This document shows positions 28,311 through 38,100 of a stretch of DNA of 64,000 nucleotides, piece after piece. How positions within the stretch are numbered: position 1 is the stretch's first letter; every line of letters begins with the position of its first letter. Source of the stretch: Phaeosaccion multiseriatum (taxonomy: Eukaryota > Protista > Ochrophyta, other classes); assembly GCA_965112735.1 (NCBI GenBank), contig OZ218950.1, forward strand, positions 7,006,001-7,070,000, in the 5' to 3' direction. The notes beneath the pieces were generated by a model. The model did no database searches. It was not told the origin of the DNA and saw nothing but the letters and a program-made list of their open reading frames with translations. The translations under genes were made by a program, and so were the position numbers.

Positions 28311-31300
28311 ATGCTTACCATGCTGCTACTCTTCGGGTGTGCTACTTTGGTACACGCCTTCTGCCCCCTGAGTCCACTCTCTCGTTTCAGTGAGCAACCC
28401 CTTCTTTCTCCCCCCTTCTCTTCCCCTTCCCTCCTAGCTTCCGTTCCTCAAAGAATGAAAATGGCAAGTGCTGAGGGAAAAGTGAGCTGGGCGGATGTAG
28501 GGCCTAACGAATTGATCGATTTCCTCGCGCAATGCAGGCTGGCAGGTGGGTGAGGGTGGACCGATCATAACACAAATCTCAAATCTCCCTCTCTCTCCCT
28601 CCAGACTCTTTCTCCTCTCGGCCTCCCCCCCCCCCCCAATGTGCCTATCTCTCTATCTCGCTTCCTCCCTCTCTTTTATTTTTTTGCTCCCTGTGCTATC
28701 AGGCGAGTATCTTTTAATCTTCGCTTTTTTTACTCCCTTAGGTACTTGTCACGGCGATCTTTCCTCGTCTACTCTTAGTGTAGTTAGATCGACACTACCA
28801 CCAGGCTGTGATCACCAGTCGCGCATCTCCAGCAACAGTCCTGATCCTACGACTCTCAGGCTGCAGTACAGAGGCAGCAGCTGCGAGGAGTGGTCAGAGC
28901 GGGCAGAGATGATCATGGCAAGGAAGCTGTTTGCTTTGGCCACCAGAAGGCCCAATGATAGAGAAGAAGCAAAGGAGGAGGGGAAGGAGGACGAGGAGCA
29001 AGACGATATGAGGATGATTTTGGATTGCGCGAGTCATGAGCCGCTGGACAAGCGCTACTTCTTCGGGGCCGACCATCTTATTCCCTTAGCTCCTGCTGCT
29101 GCTGCTGCTGCGGCGGCGGCGGCGGCTACTGATGGTGATGATGATGGCGATGATGAGAATTATGATGATGACGCTGCCGGCGCAGCTACTGCTGAGGACG
29201 GCAGTAGGACGGTGGAAAGCGAGAACGATACTACCAGCACAGCAACCACTCCTCGCCCTCAGGAGGGCCCTCAGGAGGGCCCTCAGGAGGGCCCTCAGGA
29301 GGAAGGAAGTGGGGACTGGGTGATGGAACAGTCCTCCTCTTCTACTCCATCTGTTGGTGTGCTGATCAAGACATGTGCCATGGAGTGGAGAACGATCAGG
29401 GCACGTGTGGAGCACATTGTATGCGTTGTGCGTCGTGTGGGGCGGAGCGGCAGGACAAGGAGGAGGAGGAGGACGACGAGAAGGGAAGAGAGGGGGAAGG
29501 CAGCCACGAGAGGCTCTCTAGTAGGAGGCAGTCGAAGCAGCACCAACCGCAGCGGGGAGAAGGAGACGGAGCAGTCCGCTAGCAAGAGCAGCGCCCCCAG
29601 CAGAGGCGGTAGTAGTGGCAGCACCAGTCAGCCTGAGGAGGGGAGAGCAGTACCAGCACTCGGAGAAGTCGTTGTTATCGTGGATTCGCGCGAGAAAGAC
29701 TTCCTCCGTGCATACGACACTCCCGACATGCAGTCCTTGCTGCAAAGCTTGGATGAGCTGCAGAGAGAGGGCTTCGTTCAGCGCGTCGTGAGGGCCACCC
29801 CGAGGGCGGACGGAGTAATGAAGGCGTGGTTTGGGCTGGACGTAAGTGCCAAGCAAACGAACAAACCAACGGGTATGGGTCTGTGGGCTGTCTCTGCCTG
29901 TGTTTGCTTTTTCATATATATGTAGTGTGTGTGTGTGCGTGTGTATGTCTGTCTGTGTGTGCGCTCGTGCGTGTGTGTACGTGTCTGTATAGGTTACGGT
30001 CGCCGTGTGGTGTGTTTTTGAAGTTGCGTGTGCAACTCTGTGGACCCCCGCCTCTTTGATGGCCTTCTACTGTGCGTCCACTCATACAAACACACAGGCC
30101 AGCCATCGCGAAATCAAAGTCTCACAGTCTTACCCTTGCCCCCTTTCACCACCCAACGCCCCCCTCATCACCCCACACGCCTTCGCTCCCTACACATCTT
30201 GGGCCCTGCTATCTTGCGCCTTACTGCCCATCATCCTCCATCATGCTATGTTGCGAGAGAAGCCGAGTGAGAGCACTGCACAGCTCACCCATGCACCCAA
30301 CGGAGCAGTCATCTCTGCCGCCCTGGAGGGCCTTGCTCGTGTGCAGGCCGACATCGTGCTGCAGCTGGACTCTGACGTCCTCTTGTCCGTCGACGAGATC
30401 CAAGGACAACCCAAAGGTATGCTTGTGGGTGCGTGCGTGCGTGCGTGTTGTTGTGTATGTATGTGTGCGTTTCGCGCACGTGTGTTGTTGTGCTTGCAAT
30501 TCAATGCAATGCAAATGCACATCCTATTGACTTAGTCGACGAGGGTGCCTCTCTCTTGCCGCTGCTCACAGGGTTCTTGCCCGTCCTTGAGCTCTTTGAA
30601 AAGGACCGCTCAGCAGTGGCGTTGGCGGTGGCAGGCTTCCACGACAGGGGGCGGAGAATGGAGACGGAAACACCCACGCACACCTACCCGGTGAGTGGTG
30701 AAGTGAGAGAAGCCCTGTAGAATTGGGTCGGATTGGGTGTTTCACAAGGAAGCTTTCACCCTTCTGTTCCTTTTGCCCAGCAGCCCGTGTACGCTCCACT
30801 CGTCTCCTCGGTTGGTGGTGTGCAAGAAGACGAAAAGTCACTCACTCGTCATGGCACGGTTCTCTCCTCTGCTGCTCCCATGCCCAAGCAATGTTCAATA
30901 TTCCCCAGTCCTCCCCCTCCACTCTGGCCACTGCTACCGGCATTCTGCTCACTCGCACTCCCAACGTTCCTCACTTACTGTCCTCGCTGCTCTCACTGGA
31001 TACTGCTGCTCCCTCTCACGCTCACACACCCGGCTCTGCTCCGATGTGAAACACCCAAATACACACACTCACACGCACACGCGCGCACACACACAACAAA
31101 TACACAGGGTTCGGAGGAGGGGTATCGCATCGAATCTCGGGCGTCCTTCATCCACATGGGGCGGTTACGGAAAGTGCTGCCTTTCGAGAAGGTCGACCTT
31201 CGGAGCAAGGGGAAGATAGGTGAGTGGAGTCCTGATGGAAGCTGAGTGCCAACGTGCCAATTGAAGTGCCGTTGTTACGTGTGAGCATGTTCTACCATCT

Positions 31301-33023
31301 GCTGCTATCTGCTGCTACGGTAACGGTAACCGCGTGCGGGGGCGAGGAAAGCGGCAGAGTATTGCATTTATGAGAGCGCATTCATCACAGCAAGGTGGTG
31401 CTCGTTGCTTCAACAAGATAGCACGGAGCAAGGATAGAGCCTGCTGTTCGCGTGATTAGACAGTGTCCTGTCCACATCATTGTTCCCTCTGGCTACCACC
31501 GGCCCGTGATGACGCAATCCAATGCCATAGGGGGGTGGCAGAGGTGGGTGGATGAGGGCCTTCGTCTTTCGGGGTCCTCCTCCTGCCTCGCACCCGAGGA
31601 GCCCAAAACTCATCTCCATGATTGGCGGCATGGTCACATTTTGGAGGGGGAGAAGCGCGTTGGGTCGAAGGAGGAGCAGCAGCAGCAGCAGCAGCAGCAG
31701 GAGGAGGACGAGGAGGAGGAGGAGGAGGAGGAGGAGGAGGAGGAGGAGGAGGAGGAGGAGGAGGAGGGTCTGCTGCAGCAGGGGAAAAGGGCGCAGCAGC
31801 GCCTCGGCCTGAGGTCCTATCGAGGCGGGGCAACGGGGCTGATGTACACGCACCCCTCCAACGAATTCAAGGGACAGACTGCCCAGTACCCGCTCTTCAT
31901 ATCCATTCTCGAGCAGATGAAACAGGTACGCGAGTAGGACCCAGAAAGGTTCTCTAGTTTAGAACTCCTCCTCGCTACACACCATCTCACTCTCTCGCTC
32001 TCTCGCTCGCTCTCTCGCTCGCTCTCTCGCTCTCTCCCTCACTCCTTGCTTCCCCCCTCCCTCTCTGTCTGTTTCACTCCCTCTCTCTCGCCCCCCCCCC
32101 CCCCCTTTCTGCTTGTGTTTGTGCATCAAGGTACCGCGAGGGCAGTGGGACAAGATGGTACTGGACGAGCATCTTCCTTTGACGGAGTGGACTCGAGGCT
32201 TGGTCGACCCCCTCAGTCCTGTGGTGTTCGTCTGCTGTGGAGGTGGGGAAGCGCTCACAGCCACACACGTTTGGCGCTGCATGCGCTCTCTTAGGGCTCA
32301 GACGTTCACCCAGTGGTCCGCGGTGGTCATGCTCGACGAATGTCACCCGTCTGTGTCTGATGTGCTCTTTGCAGAGGCGCAAGGCGAGGAGGAGGAGGAG
32401 GAGGAGGAGGAGGAGGAGGAGGAGGAGGAGGAGGAGGAGGAGGAGGAGCCCGACAGAGGAGAGGTGAGAGGGGGCAGAGAGGGAAGTGCTGACGGTGTGC
32501 ATCAGGACGCCGCCTCCTCCTCCTCCTCCTCCTCCTCCTCCTCCTCCTCCTCCTCCTCCTCGCTTCTTCGGCGTCACGATGGCGCTGCTGATTCCCGCAT
32601 CACCGTGCTACGCACCCATCACCAGAGGGGGGGATTGGCCAACATGGTAACCGTTATCAGGGACGTCATTCCTCCCGAGGCCAACCCTGTATGTATTACC
32701 CTTGACTTGGATGACTGCCTCTTCGATGAAAGGGCTCTTGCGCGAATTATGGCAGTCTACGACAAGTCTCCGGGCCTCGAGCTGGCCGTGGGGGGCATGT
32801 ACAGGAGCGACAAGCCCGAGCAGGTGAGGGCCACGGGGAGCTCTCTCTTGTTCCTTGGTCGTAGAGCTACTGCACTGCACTGCACTGCACTGCACTGTAG
32901 TTTTTGCTTTGCTTTGCTTCGCTTCGCTTTCTTTTCACCCATTTCAAGACTGCTATTGTTGACAGCAACTCGCCATCGTTGCTGGCTGTAGAATGCCGCG
33001 GGAGGAGTGGGGGGGGGGGGCGG

Positions 33024-33081
<58 letters not shown>

Positions 33082-33554
33082 GTGTGTGTGTGCAGTGTGC
33101 CGTGCTTCTTCGCGTCTAAATCGGATACCTTCACACACTCTCTCTGTATCAGACGCTGGACATTTCCTTGGACAAGTGCCGATCGAAGAGAGGAGGAGGA
33201 AACATTTGGTCGCATTGTCGGACGTTCAGAGCCGACCTCTTCCGCCGTATTCCCGACGCGGCGCTGCGATACAAGCCTGCTGCTACCACCGGTGGTCATC
33301 ACGGGAGTCATATCGACAAGCGTGCTGGGACAGGCTCTGCTACTGGTGCTGCTGACACCAGGTACTACGACTTGGCGGCGGATTGGGCGTACATGCTGGA
33401 GATGAGTGAGATGTCTCGCTCCTCCGCCGCCCTTCCTGACCGCCTTTACTTTTACGACGCCCCTCGTAAGAGTCACAAGCGGCGGGCAGAGAGGGAACAA
33501 GTTGTTTCCCACCTGATGAGTGAAGATAAGTCGCGGCTTCTTCAAAAACGTTAA
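28311..33554 (+). CDS. Putative plastid-targeted multidomain glycosyltransferase (two GT-A/GT2-like domains plus an N-terminal kinase-like relic), ~1069 aa; exons 28311-28545, 28742-29841, 30263-30416, 30572-30690, 31108-31219, 31531-31925, 32131-32823, 33153-33554
   Basis: Signal peptide ..LVHA|FCP followed by an S/P/L-rich transit peptide; GT-A domain 1 VGVLIKTC..VVIVDS..IVLQLDSD; GT-A domain 2 VVFVCCG..RCMRSLRAQTFTQWSAVVMLDE..GGLANMV..CITLDLDDCL..NIWSHCRTFRADLF..DWAYML..LYFY. All 7 introns are phase-consistent. Confidence 0.78.
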
Positions 33555-33698: not shown

Positions 33699-35062
33699 TC
33701 ACTGCGACAGTTGGATGCCATCTATCATGTCATCCCCGAGGGCCGCGATGCCTGCCAGCACCTCGTCCATGTTCGGTACCACCATCACCACCCCCTCGGC
33801 GGCTGTGCCTTCTTCTTTCTTCTTCTCCTCCTCCTCGTCCTCCTCGTCGTCGCCGTCCTCTTCCTCCTCCTCGTCGTCGTCGTCCTCCTCGTCGCCTCTC
33901 GCCCTCTTGTTCCTTCCCTTGTTCTGCCCAGACCCACGAGCCAGCGTCTCCAGCCCTGCTGCCCCGGGGGGGGCGGTGCATCTGGCCTGCTTGATGTTCA
34001 GAGGGAGGGGCACAAAGGCGCTGGGTCGCCATACCACGGCGATGGTGTTGTTGACAGTTTCGTTCACGAAGAAGAGCGCAAGGTGTCCGAACCGATGCCT
34101 CAGGGTCTCCACAAGCTCCGTAATGGGGGAGAAGCCAACGAAGAGGGTCGGGTCTTGCTGCTTCTCGAGGAGTTCCTGCTCCTGCTCCACCCCCTGTCCT
34201 TGCCCATGCCCCTGCCCCTGCGGTCTCATTGACATATTCTTGTAGGTCTTGACGCGGAGGGCCTTGCAGCCGCGCACCCGCTGCCTGGTGAATGCCTCGC
34301 TGCCGCCCAGGCTATTGCCCAGATCCGCGCACAGAGAAGGGTGGATCTTGACGAGACAGCTGAAGCCACTCACCTCCTCCTGGGACAGCTTGAAGGCCGC
34401 GTGCCAGCCTTGCTCTCCTTGACCACCACCTCCTCCACTCCCACCCCTACCACTACTACCGCTGGTCCTGCCCGTCATCCACTCCATCAAGACTCCCGCA
34501 GACACCTTGGCAAGTGCCGACGCCCTCCTCAGCACAACCTTCTCCGGAGCCGCCCCACTCGTCCACGCCGGCGCCCACTTTGTCTCGCGGTCGTACGGCG
34601 CCACCACCCACAGACTGGGACCGTTCTCTCCTCCTCCTCGGCCGCTGCCACTGCCCCCCGCCCTCGCCCTCGCGCGTTCAAAGGCCGTCAGTACGTCACC
34701 GACATCGGTGCTGCTCAAGTCGCCATGTGGGTCCACGATGAGAGGGAGGCGCTCCCAGTCATGTGTGCCCAGGAGTAGAAGGAAGCGCAGAAAGCCGGAC
34801 AAGGCCGAGGAGGGCGGCGTCAGAGGCTCGGGAGAGGAGAAGAGAGCCGCCACCATGAGCTCAATGGTTTCTGCCGACACGTGTCCCGACAGCAAGTGCG
34901 AGTGCAGCCAGCGCAGAGCGAGGCGCACAACGACACCGTAGATGGGCTGCTGGAGGTGGAGGTTGTGAATGAGGCTGTGGTGCGCGCCAGCCTTATCAAC
35001 AAGTCTGGAGATGGTCTGTGCCTCCTCCGCCAGTGAGCTGCCGCCGCTACTGTCACCACCAC

Positions 35063-35100
<38 letters not shown>

Positions 35101-38100
35101 ACAACTTCGGCCTTCTCCCTCTTGCTGGCCAGGCGCAGTCTCCAGCAATATCCGCTGCTATATACGTCCAGGTGGTCTTCTCCGACGGAGCACACGAGCC
35201 CGTACTGCTGCTCCAGACACTGCGCCAGCCGCACCAGCAGAGCCGTCATGGTCGCCCTCACCGCTCGGAGTCCCGCAGGCCAGTGCCCGCTCTCCTCTAG
35301 ACGCACCAGCACCAGCAGAGGCTCGGTCTGGGCGCTAATACGTGTCTTAGAGCTCCTCTGCTGCCAGTACGCCGCTCGTCCATCACCTCCTCCTCCGTCG
35401 TCGCCAGTTGCAGAAGCACCACCACCTCCCTTATCGCCCCTGCTGACCGCGAGAGGGTGCGGCAGGGGAGGGAACACCGCTGTGTATCGTAGCAGCGGCG
35501 AGGCGGCCTGCACAGCCTCCACAGCAAGGGGCATCCCCTTCACATCCCTGAGACGTTTCACCAGCCCGTCGAAGGCCGTCAGGGCCGTCCGGGTCATGTG
35601 ATCGTCGTCGTCGGGCAGCTTCAGGCCGGCGGAGACAGACTTTGCGAGGTCATCAGGGGTGCCCCAGCCGACCGCCACGAGCGACATTAGGTCATTGCCT
35701 GCGAAGCGCAGAGGCTGGGTGGTTGGTTGGTCGTTTGATTGGTTGGTTGGGGAGCGAGGAGGAGGGGGTGGGGGGACACGGAGGAGCTGTCAAGAGCGGC
35801 GCCATCGGATACAGCAGGTGACGCACTTCACGACCATCGCTCTCTCCCCTTGCCAAGCCATCCATGCTTACCTCCCTCACACCCACCCACTCCCACCCTC
35901 CCTTCATCCCTCCTTCCCACCCACTCCCTCCCTCCCTTCCACCCACTCCCTCCTTCTCCCCCCCCCCCCCCCTCCCTCCCTCCCTCCCTTCCTCCCTCCC
36001 TCCTCCTCACTCACCGAGCGGGGCCCTCTACACGGTGGAAAGTGCATGCCCAGCACATGCCTCACAATTTGCTCCAAGATGCGATGCTTGGACCCCTTGA
36101 CGCCTGACTCCCCCCCCCACACCACTGCTTCCACAATATCACCGTCTTGGAAGCGTCGTAGCCCCGCCTTGCTCCCCCAAAACTCTCGAAAGGCCCTCGC
36201 CTTGTCCGCCTGTTGCTGCTGCTGCTGCTGTATCACCAATTGCTCCCCCTCTTGCTGCTGCTGCTGCGTGCCTCCGGACGCCGCTTGAGCGGAAGGGCCT
36301 CTATCCACCAACCGAGTGGCATTCTCCGCTCGTACAAGTATGCCTAGACTGAGCCCCTCCACCACCCCCTTCCTCCCCAGCCCCCCTCCTCCCCCTCCCC
36401 CTCCCCCTCCCCCACCACCACCACCCCTCCCCCTCCCCCTGCCGCTCCCGCTCCCCTCGAACTCTAACCCGAATACCGGAGCATGTTGCCCAAGCTCCCA
36501 GCCCTGGCACCCCGGTGCTCCCAAAAAGTCCTCCCCGGCCTCCGCATCCGGCCCGAGCAGGGGCCGAACTCGCCATGCGCGGTCCCCAAGCCCCTTTCTC
36601 AGGAGCGCTGTGACACGCTGAGCCACGTATTGGGAAGGGGTTAGGTCCAACAGCCCCAGGGCCTCCTCAAGGGTTTCCGAGGAAGTATACTCGACCCCCT
36701 CCTCCTCCTCCTCCTCCTCCTCCTCTTGTCTCTTGTTCTTGCTCTTGTTCTTGCCGCCCCCCCTCCGTCCACCAGCCACAGCAGCTGGTGATACAGCAGC
36801 AGCAGCAGCAGTAGCAGCAGACGCCAGTGCGACCGGCACGTAGACGAAGGCGTCATGCTTGCGCCAGAACGAGGCACGGCTGGTGAACAGAGCAGCAAAG
36901 GCACCACCTGTCGCCGAGGATGACGACGACGAAGACCCACCCCCAACGAGCAATTGCAACGACCTCTTCGCCTCCTCCTGCACCTCCTCCACGGCAGAGC
37001 GACTCATCCTCGCCAGCACGTTGAGGCCCGTAGAGGTGTCCACGAGCACGGCGTCAAAGGCCGCTCGAAAGGCGGCCTCTCCCTCAGCAGACAGGGTAGT
37101 GGGGGCTTCGGGCGAGCACTGCACAGCCAGACACGAGGCCCGCGAGGAGAGCTTTCCTTCTGCCAGCCACTGCAGCATGACGGACAGCACCTGCACGGCA
37201 CTCATCCGAGGGGACAAGCGCTTGTTTTGCACGAGGGCGAGTAGCAGCATGGACCACTCGTGCCCACCCAGAGAGTCGTGGGCCGTGCGCATGCCCCTCT
37301 GCCCCAGCCAAACCTTACCCAACAACACGGCGTCCTGCAGGGCCGGGGCGTTTGCCAGTTGTGAGTGGAGGGCGGCGAGGTGTGTCTTCATTGACATGTC
37401 CTCCAGCACGGCGGCGTTGTAGTGAGGGGTGGCAGGGAGAAGCTCCTCCTCCGCCTCACCCTTGGCGACTCCTGCTCCTGCTCTCCCCCCGCCTCCCCGC
37501 TCCCCCGCTGCTGCTGCCCTCTTGACTATCTCTCTGAGGTGGGGCGGGAGGCGGACGTTGTTGCGCTGCGGGTGCAGCTTGGCGGGAGAGAGGATACCCC
37601 CGTCGGGAGGGAGGCACGGCAGCAGCCGCACCACAAACTTTGCGCCGGCTCCGGACGAGGAAGACGAGGACGGCAGGCGCGGAGACAGCAGCAGGATGGG
37701 CTTCCTACTGTCCCCGCAAAAGTACGCCACCTTCACGTCCCGCACAAGGCCGTGCAAGGCAGATCCCTCGGCCGAGAGGCTCTTGGCGATATGCCCCAGG
37801 TAAAGAGCGCGCTTGTCAAAATAGCGGTGGTTGAGGATATCCTTCGGCAGCAGACTCGCCTGAGGCAAGCCGATTGCAAGGTCGATGTTCAGACTCGGCT
37901 TGATGAGCGTGCGCTGGAGGTAGCTGCCCACGAGGTCGAAGCTCTGGGGGGGGGTGAAGTGCAGGGACACAGGCTTGGACGGGGTGTGGTTCTCCAGGCG
38001 GATGCCCGCCACGGTGGACCCGCTCCCCCCAATCCCCCCTCCTACTCCTCTTCCCCTCAGCGTATTGGCCTCGTTGACGTTCTCACAGTCCGGGAGGTCC

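Follow-up and report, generated by a model that had tools for sequence, protein, structure and literature searches.

We analysed a window of 64,000 nucleotides from the ochrophyte alga Phaeosaccion multiseriatum (assembly GCA_965112735.1, contig OZ218950.1, positions 7,006,001 to 7,070,000 of the forward strand); algal positions below are those of this window. On its plus strand, at 28311-33554, sequence and homology identify a real, nuclear, intron-containing gene whose product has ~1,070 residues. The gene is a truncated eukaryotic member of a known enzyme kind, the tandem GT-A glycosyltransferases, and the prokaryotic family to which it traces back is undescribed. We consider it probable that the gene descends from a giant prokaryotic protein and encodes a two-site glycosyltransferase, from which the kinase and methyltransferase parts were shed and to which a new N-terminus was added.

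The gene consists of eight exons and seven introns. All introns run from GT to AG, the phases are compatible, and the exons, which sum to ~3,213 nt, form one open frame of ~1,070 codons. As the four public runs that hold the stretch contain only DNA (contigs of one sample, continuous through the introns, with no splice joints seen), the exon model was tested by homology. A family profile was built from 45 homologous modules and scored separately on each exon. The algal searches and trees were likewise done exon by exon, and structures were predicted for a bacterial family member. The profile matches follow one another in strict order across the exons, cover the whole 537-position module and sum to ~296 bits over the separate exons. 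When homologues were searched against the window with tblastn, exons 2, 3, 5, 6, 7 and 8 were matched in the same order. The initial annotation had held that the gene is visible only after joining eight exons, and this is borne out by exons that match the family profile singly and in order.

Exon 1 (28311-28545) opens with the first in-frame ATG after a stop and ends in a kinase-like remnant, which intron 1 (28546-28741, GT..AG, 196 nt) interrupts. Exon 2 (28742-29841) matches profile positions 11-39 and 48-111 with 71.7 bits. It holds the start of the first glycosyltransferase domain (domain 1), namely VLIKTCAMEWRTI, a 75-residue Arg/Ser insert and VVVIVDSREKDF...WFGLD, and also an acidic/Ala low-complexity sequence at the place where a methyltransferase would be expected. 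The DxD motif of domain 1 lies in exon 3 (30284-30416; 23.4 bits at profile positions 115-148), within THAPNG...VLQLDSD. The acceptor of this exon can be chosen from three in-frame AG sites (30260, 30272 and 30284), of which 30284 alone has CAG; the acceptor at 30272 would yield WFGLDS, as in the bacterial homologues. Exon 4 (30572-30690) is the VLELFEKDRSAVALAV stretch of domain 1. Its profile match (positions 161-191, 0.6 bits) is weak and collinear; in the alignment the exon is in register with the homologues and pairs with ELYEKDRAA of a chytrid relative described below. Exon 5 (31108-31219; profile positions 191-216, 13.4 bits) corresponds to GYRIESRASFIHMGRLRKVLP of domain 1 and keeps R195, E197, R199, R207 and P213.

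Exon 6 (31531-31925; profile positions 236-275 with the alignment starting from 227, 17.7 bits) contains WQRWVDE with the candidate catalytic base D232, a 70-residue Gln/Glu insert and LRSYRGG..HPSNEFK, which is the end of domain 1. The conserved residues W227, R229, D232, S242, R244, G245, H254, N257 and K260 are kept in this exon. Exon 7 (32131-32823; profile positions 293-430, 85.1 bits) forms the first two thirds of domain 2, which is of the Pfam GT2 type: VVFVCCGGG...VVMLDE, a 55-residue poly-Glu/poly-Ser insert, and RGGLAN...CITLDLDDCL...VGGMYRSDK. It keeps D340, D395, D397, D398, G422, M424, R426, D428 and K429. Exon 8 (33153-33554; profile positions 435-532, 83.9 bits) completes domain 2 with CRSKRGGGNIWSHCRTFRADLF, a 27-residue insert of Gly/Thr/His and ADWAYMLEMSE...LYFYD, and ends in TAA. 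Here R441, W449, H451, R453, F455, D480, W481, M484, E489 and Y502 are kept. Long low-complexity inserts, four in all, in exons 2, 6, 7 and 8, lie without exception between predicted secondary-structure elements. Within exons 2, 6 and 7, long in-frame triplet runs of GAG/GAA, CAG, TCC and GCT/GCG occur at 29090-29130, 31660-31770, 32380-32450 and 32510-32560, each of them in a loop of the predicted fold.

Every intron has stops in the continuing frame, intron 1 excepted in one frame. The GC content at third codon positions (GC3) is 0.54-0.81 in the exons, mostly above the intron GC of 0.49-0.58; exons 1, 2 and 8, at 0.54-0.61, are barely above it. Repeats of (CT)n and (GT)n abound in the introns, for example at 31990-32060 and 33025-33090. 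Downstream, a convergent open reading frame of 662 residues on the minus strand (33699-35687) encodes Nrap domains 4, 5 and 6 of the nucleolar protein 6/UTP22 type, and the two stop codons are ~145 nt apart. The seven introns and this core eukaryotic neighbour rule out contamination, so that the algal copy is truly nuclear.

The conserved core of ~530 residues is modelled as a tandem GT-A module in which a classical GT2 domain comes after a divergent GT-A domain. Conservation was judged on the columns in which at least 93% of 213 modules agree. The alga retains ~75 of the ~105 highly conserved columns, including every acidic residue of both DxD sites. In domain 1, D56, R64, W107, H116, D142 and D144 are kept in addition to the residues of exons 5 and 6; D142 and D144 (QLDSD, the DxD after strand 4) are invariant in the 213 modules. 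D88 is replaced by Gln, and a few further conserved residues are lost across the module. The DxD of domain 2, TLDLDD, falls on the invariant D395, D397 and D398, and D340, D428 and D480 are also kept. The first Asp-Asp after strand 2 of domain 2 reads LDE in the alga. Judged from these residues, both glycosyltransferase active sites (D...DxD...D) look intact. Two GT-A domains with the DxD motifs QLDSD and TLDLDD had been proposed in the initial annotation, and the folds of the family models and the retained invariant residues agree with it. These two motifs, LIKTCAMEWRTI, SYRGG..HP.N and R.GGN.W.H.RTF are all present, and all of them lie on the most conserved columns of the family.

For a bacterial member (the first row of the alignment), AlphaFold2 predicted the module with a pLDDT of 94 and a pTM of 0.90, and domain 1 alone with a pLDDT of 95. 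The best match of the whole module in the PDB is the E. coli K4 chondroitin polymerase K4CP (2z86/2z87; Foldseek E 1.8e-18). The superposition with K4CP (VIA Z 22.8, 404 residues aligned over model residues 10-532) has a root-mean-square deviation (rmsd) of 21.3 Å over both domains, which indicates that the two domains differ in their mutual orientation. Domain 2 (model residues 299-534) matches WrtF, RmlT, PmHS2, SpsA and TarS with Z 19-20 and rmsd 2.3-4 Å over 200-224 residues, and TarP with Z ~20. Domain 1 matches solely GT-A-fold nucleotide-sugar enzymes, with POMGnT1 (Z 14.2), GnT-I (14.0), BcsA (13.4) and ColGalT1 (13.2) in front; GalNAc-T and TarP are further matches, and nucleotidyltransferases score lower (Z ~11).

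Known enzymes with which the module can be compared are K4CP, also named KfoC (2z86, 2z87), and the Pasteurella heparosan synthase PmHS2 (8vh7). Like the family, they have two tandem GT-A domains, each with a DxD motif, and PmHS2 aligns with domain 2 of the family at Z 20.2. However, identity is only 13-16%, the domain orientation in K4CP differs, and domain 1 of the family is far more divergent (best Z 14, to GT13 enzymes). The bacterial members also lie outside capsule clusters, and the likeness is one of fold and DxD sites. With the PF00535/CAZy GT2 enzymes SpsA, TarS, TarP, RmlT and WrtF, the family shares the fold (Z 19-20), the DxD motif and the downstream acidic residue, whereas the algal exons fall below the Pfam cut-off, have LDE for Asp-Asp and carry poly-Glu/poly-Ser inserts. 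Domain 2 of the homologues is above the PF00535 threshold, for example with 98 bits in P0001 and 55.7 bits in P0005.

In front of the module, the alga carries the remains of a kinase-like domain. In the family, the 200 residues before the methyltransferase have the consensus LGxGxEGV...vfKvf...LveLLreCrrAGivCRNvHPDNLrv...LRLIDYGSD. Single-sequence Pfam searches barely detect this domain; its family profile, searched against the PDB, matches CK2alpha with E 1.2e-6 and also CDKL5, CaMKII and TTK, with the VAIK lysine, the catalytic loop and DFG aligned. The aspartate of HRD is an invariant asparagine (N128; C-R-N-x-H-P-D-N), and N133, the DFG aspartate and the VAIK lysine are conserved. Because the catalytic aspartate is replaced by asparagine while N133 and the DFG aspartate are invariant, the domain may be a pseudokinase or an atypical nucleotide-using enzyme. 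WbdD of E. coli O9a is a kinase and methyltransferase that terminates chains in O-antigen synthesis, and its resemblance to the family is a lead only. Like the family, it joins a protein-kinase-like domain to an S-adenosylmethionine (SAM) methyltransferase in a context of glycan synthesis; unlike the family, it has the reverse domain order, and in the glycosyltransferase family the HRD aspartate is asparagine. The 60 best PDB matches to the kinase-like profile do not include WbdD.

In the alga, the tail of exon 1, NELIDFLAQCRLA(G), is a remnant of the helix that precedes the kinase catalytic loop. NELIDFLAQCRLA aligns with residues 342-354 of the chytrid protein P0013 (BLASTP E 0.052) and with positions 104-114 of the bacterial profile. 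The head of exon 2 is a decayed catalytic-loop and DFG region, TCHGDLSSS...LRLQYRGSSCEEWSERAEMIMARKLF, in which residues 44-65 of the exon, GSSCEEWSERAEMIMARKLFAL, match P0013 379-400 (BLASTP E 5e-4). The two matches follow the same order as in P0013, and the bacterial profile finds them as well; 10 of 500 and 3 of 500 shuffles score as high. Between the two, TCHGDLSSSTL overlies vCRNvHPDNL of the homologues. In the homologues, the counterparts of the exon 1 tail and the exon 2 head follow each other in the same order within one uninterrupted stretch, which supports the join across intron 1; the sequence LIDFLAQCRLAG|TCHGDL is indeed formed across this intron, as first noted.

The family invariants N128, P131, N133 and D145 are replaced in the alga (CHGDLSSS, LRLQYRGSS), only G147 and M161 remain, and the remnant contains an 18-residue insert. 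For the kinase N-lobe with its Gly-rich loop and VAIK lysine, no match was found before NELIDFLAQCR or upstream in the window (tblastn with the N-terminal parts of the homologues). By its sequence, the kinase-like part of the algal protein is a catalytically dead C-lobe stub, a relic. The initial annotation had seen a kinase relic here with an HxD catalytic loop. A decayed, homologous remnant is present; H-G-D does not fall exactly on HRD when anchored on the conserved Cys, and the HxD reading is corrected in that the HRD aspartate is already Asn (CRN) throughout the family. Algal exons 1 and 2 gave no Pfam or NCBIfam match to a methyltransferase, nor did a profile of the methyltransferase region of the homologues match there. 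We had also considered a methyltransferase relic in the alga, from the by-eye likeness of ILDCASHEP to vLDyGCGkG, and rejected it as it had no statistical support.

The relatives of the gene are overwhelmingly prokaryotic. Searching exon 2 with phmmer against 1.84 billion representative proteins gave 18 matches, all of them large members of one family, which cover LIKTCAMEWRTI and the VVVIVDSREKDF...WFGLD segment; a word-index search with the same exon found nothing within its length window. The prokaryotic relatives have ~1,750 residues and contain, in order, a GT2 domain, a DDD-bearing region, the kinase-like domain, a class I SAM methyltransferase, the GT-A domain and the second GT2 domain, so that the module forms the C-terminal end of these giants. 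The algal protein is homologous to them end to end in the GT-A and GT2 module and matches them in the kinase-like stub, whereas the N-terminal GT2 domain, the DDD-bearing region, the full kinase-like domain and the methyltransferase are extra in the giants. That the relatives are uncharacterised prokaryotic fusions with a kinase-like domain was foreseen in the initial annotation and is supported by the CK2alpha match; its wording as a kinase-GT2 fusion names two parts that are present and leaves out the SAM methyltransferase and the further glycosyltransferase domains. The middle region of the giants (~150-800) has an invariant VVWILDDD and many invariant Arg/Asp residues. A profile of this region found no match in the PDB; by its sequence, it is possibly a further, very divergent glycosyltransferase-like domain.

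In a scan with one genome per species, the module was found in at least 172 prokaryotic species, and it occurs in hundreds of prokaryotic proteins. The carriers include Planctomycetota, Myxococcota, Pseudomonadota, Dehalococcoidia, Latescibacterota, Verrucomicrobiota and one Thermoplasmata archaeon, among the cultured ones Salinisphaera dokdonensis and Rubrivivax sp. A210; it is also present on four IMG/VR contigs. For the giants from Phycisphaerae bacterium (HBSAPP03_05960), Defluviicoccus sp., Rhodovulum sulfidophilum and Salinisphaera dokdonensis, the annotation goes no further than glycosyltransferase or SAM-dependent methyltransferase. LDcluster4 (SLOG), a histidine phosphatase or a polysaccharide deacetylase is an additional part of some members, and shorter forms consist of the methyltransferase and the module or of the module alone. 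At 51 of 85 loci, a SLOG LDcluster4 open reading frame lies on the same strand, overlapping the giant gene or directly after it, and SLOG is fused to the giant in P0007, P0015, P0070 and the chytrid P0013. Neither the extra domains of the giants nor SLOG was found within the algal 64-kb window.

The gene neighbourhoods of the prokaryotic homologues, which had been named as a point to check, were inspected at five loci. They are defence or mobile islands, usually with the SLOG gene downstream; none of the five is a polysaccharide cluster. The genes found there are JetABCD, McrBC, SIR2-HerA, PemK, a SmaI-type restriction-modification pair, MqsA, TrwC, integrases and a resolvase. PADLOC reported only 'mad2', through a generic methyltransferase domain, and a marginal PD-T4-6 match to the kinase-like part of one bacterial protein. 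As it sees the generic methyltransferase part only, the family stands outside any catalogued defence system. We found no description of the family in literature on SLOG/LDcluster4 together with glycosyltransferase. The prokaryotic family may be an undescribed conflict-system component, and the pseudokinase-like domain, the SLOG linkage and the Wadjet, McrBC, SIR2-HerA, restriction-modification and toxin-antitoxin neighbours make it worth testing for a function in defence or in mobile elements.

The only other eukaryotic member found is HK101_010477 (P0013) of the chytrid Irineochytrium annulatum (JADGJL010000073.1), on a contig with introns and ordinary eukaryotic neighbours. Its overall identity to the algal protein is ~35-40%. 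Where the alga has a stub, the chytrid protein keeps the kinase-like domain complete (168.8 bits); it also carries, by fusion, a SLOG domain and a class V aminotransferase, and motif I (GxGxG) of its methyltransferase is lost as well. No further eukaryotic members were recognised in the exon 2 phmmer search, among the 120 best matches of the chytrid module or in two metagenome scans, and the scans, made with the exon 7 and exon 8 peptides, gave no close relative. In the family profile search, all of the 120 matches listed are strong prokaryotic ones, so that weak eukaryotic members would be outside its reach. A broadly conserved eukaryotic glycosyltransferase family would have spoken against the foreign origin suggested initially; the family proved overwhelmingly prokaryotic, with two eukaryotes found in these searches. 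The alga lacks a chytrid intron located within KSR|LRS, and algal intron 5 has no counterpart in the chytrid; one junction is ambiguous, as real coding DNA is skipped in the chytrid annotation. Wherever intron positions could be compared, none is shared, which says little either way about a common origin. The model HK101_010477 splices out PYRVESRGSFIFKSR and LRSLRPL...GWYRILDEAI...SYRGGNATT (L003:12300-12710). As this is conserved coding DNA of GT-A domain 1, the annotation is wrong there.

By sequence, the ancestry of the algal gene is prokaryotic, and the most likely origin of both the algal and the chytrid copy is a single source, either a eukaryote or a prokaryote that has not been sampled. 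The alternative of a direct and recent transfer from a bacterium to the alga, independent of the chytrid copy, could draw on the best match of exon 2, which is bacterial (P0001, E 3.8e-7), on per-exon identities to bacteria (~40-50%) that are as high as those to the chytrid, and on the trees of exon 2, which does not join the two, and exon 8, in which they stand near the same bacterial rows and are not joined. We regard it as unlikely, because alga and chytrid agree in a rare residue at six columns (311G, 313L, 384I, 417L, 420A and 423G) where conservation in prokaryotes is 93% or more, and no prokaryotic module among 212 contains more than a single one of them. The two also share Y194 and F202 of exon 5, found outside the alga in the chytrid only, and K and L of RKLF, ~ten rare residues overall; methyltransferase GxGxG is lost in both, and alga and chytrid are joined in the exon 7 tree (SH-aLRT 96), each of them on a long branch. 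With the closest relative a chytrid gene that shares ~ten rare residues, direct or recent transfer is not established. The horizontal acquisition proposed initially thus holds as far as the prokaryotic family, the algal introns and the eukaryotic neighbour reach. The phylogeny that was to accompany it consists of per-exon trees, poorly resolved and with long branches, which place the alga with the chytrid on exon 7 only and resolve no specific prokaryotic donor clade.

Where the enzyme would act depends on its N-terminus. The first in-frame ATG at 28311 has G at -3 and opens MLTMLLLFGCATLVHA|FCPLSPLSRF.... The mean Kyte-Doolittle hydropathy is 2.0-2.5 over residues 1-15; relative to the likely cleavage site, Val stands at -3, Ala at -1 and Phe at +1. 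The signal-peptide-like N-terminus MLTMLLLFGCATLVHA|FCP, with Phe after the VHA site, is present as initially described. After VHA|F follows a Ser/Pro-rich stretch; the first 40 residues contain 9 Ser/Thr, 7 Pro, 3 basic and 2 acidic residues, and the first 20 contain 4 Ser, 1 Arg and 1 Glu, which gives a net charge of zero and 20% hydroxylated residues. An ordinary signal peptide or anchor, with the enzyme acting in the endoplasmic reticulum (ER) or Golgi on a secreted or wall glycan, is a serious possibility that still falls somewhat short of an even chance. A short N-terminal anchor followed by a Pro/Ser stem is the standard layout of Golgi glycosyltransferases, and the alga has a hydrophobic N-terminus, a Ser/Pro-rich linker and then the catalytic domains. 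The chytrid relative starts MLGVNEPVRRIWLVIGIPVAFGSL..., a basic stretch and then a hydrophobic one, and the structural neighbours are glycosyltransferases of polysaccharides and wall polymers. However, no basic residues precede the algal hydrophobic stretch, which thus has no basic n-region, and the Phe at +1 points elsewhere: F, W, Y or L at this position is the key criterion of ASAFind, and Phe at +1 separates plastid from other secretory proteins in such algae (PMC4329603).

The plastid reading of the initial annotation, in which a bipartite signal and transit peptide would bring the enzyme to the complex plastid or the periplastidial space for an undescribed glycosylation, draws on this Phe, on the hydrophobic core with small residues at -3 and -1 and on the Ser/Pro-rich 40 residues with 3 basic against 2 acidic ones. 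We hold it to be possible but doubtful; the probability left over by this and the ER/Golgi reading goes to another location or to none. Zero net charge, 20% hydroxylated residues and many prolines are unfavourable to a transit peptide, and the anchor and stem also fit the Golgi layout. The chytrid, an organism with no plastid, has a protein that begins hydrophobic as well, which fits plain ER/Golgi entry equally, and none of the homologues has a plastid link. The start itself is uncertain: an internal Met (MKMASAEGK) could serve as an alternative, and out-of-frame ATGs precede the proposed start. The upstream reading frames from 28292 and 28303 are short, end at 28391-28393 and 28369-28371, and could lower or shift initiation. 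It is improbable in our view that the algal and chytrid genes are domesticated remnants of the prokaryotic giant/SLOG system with the algal glycosyltransferase sent to the plastid or periplastidial space. If so, the ancestral product could be a modified nucleotide or glycan used against phages or mobile elements, and the glycosylation would be new to plastid biology.

For the enzyme itself, we favour descent from a prokaryotic giant with retention of a two-site glycosyltransferase. The algal gene would have lost the N-terminal GT2 domain, the kinase N-lobe and the methyltransferase, received a hydrophobic N-terminus in front, kept both active sites and gained seven introns and four low-complexity loop inserts. 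The protein would enter the ER through its hydrophobic N-terminus. Its two metal-dependent (DxD) sites for nucleotide sugars would then, within the lumen of a compartment, add two sugars, in succession or alternation, and build a disaccharide unit or repeat on an acceptor in the manner of K4CP or PmHS2. Gene structure, homology, family fold, retained catalytic residues and the decayed kinase part are direct results; two-site activity, donor, acceptor and compartment of the algal enzyme we infer by analogy.

Several points weigh against this reading. Sequence and homology alone carry the case for transcription, start codon, exon 3 acceptor and intron 1, and out-of-frame ATGs in weak context stand 19 and 8 nt before the proposed start. 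The predicted fold is that of a bacterial member and not of the alga's own protein. Pfam GT2 (PF00535) stays below its threshold of 23.3 bits on the algal exons (13.0 bits for exon 7, 13.6 bits for exon 3); single-exon scans of Pfam and NCBIfam gave only such sub-threshold GT2 matches around QLDSD and TLDLDD together with low-complexity noise, and phmmer of exon 7 against the PDB gave low-complexity noise only. In domain 2, the near-invariant residues R300, E302, R311, G334 and P486 are replaced (R300P, E302S, R311G, G334S and P486E), so that activity or specificity may have changed. As the bacterial genes lie in defence or mobile islands with a SLOG partner and not in polysaccharide clusters, the ancestral substrate may not be a classical polysaccharide. 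These lost residues, the four long inserts, the DNA-only runs in which no splice joints were seen, and the failure to find a stramenopile orthologue with exon 2 phmmer or the exon 7 and 8 metagenome scans would also suit a decaying acquisition on its way to loss, with inactive glycosyltransferase domains or a silent gene. Such decay seems improbable for a frame of ~1,070 codons that is open across eight exons in correct phase, in which ~75 of ~105 highly conserved columns and all acidic residues of the DxD sites are kept, every insert falls in a loop between predicted secondary-structure elements, and GC3 is mostly above intron GC, though barely so in exons 1, 2 and 8.

The alga thus offers a prokaryote-type two-site glycosyltransferase that has turned into a spliced nuclear gene, with domain-by-domain decay after transfer, and a candidate enzyme for a glycan that may belong to the cell wall, to the endomembranes or, possibly, to the plastid. 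The spread among eukaryotes is patchy (one stramenopile alga and one chytrid), and together with the shared derived residues it bears on gene movement between eukaryotes. The parent family, with at least 172 species, a pseudokinase-like domain and SLOG linkage, may outweigh the algal gene in importance.

Two minor observations concern the data. In the ESM Atlas, the nearest clusters to exon 8 are unnamed viral proteins and one 'putative glycosyltransferase' (0.90); these were not used as evidence. Two of the public runs, X1 and X4, which come from the same sample as X2 and X3, have one base fewer in the homopolymers at 28410 and 32627, and X1 alone also at 28625. For the G-run at 32620-32627 in exon 7, conserved sequence on both sides confirms the frame. 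Loss of a base at 32627 would break the conserved RGGLAN, so run-specific homopolymer errors are likely, and the version in the window keeps the frame.

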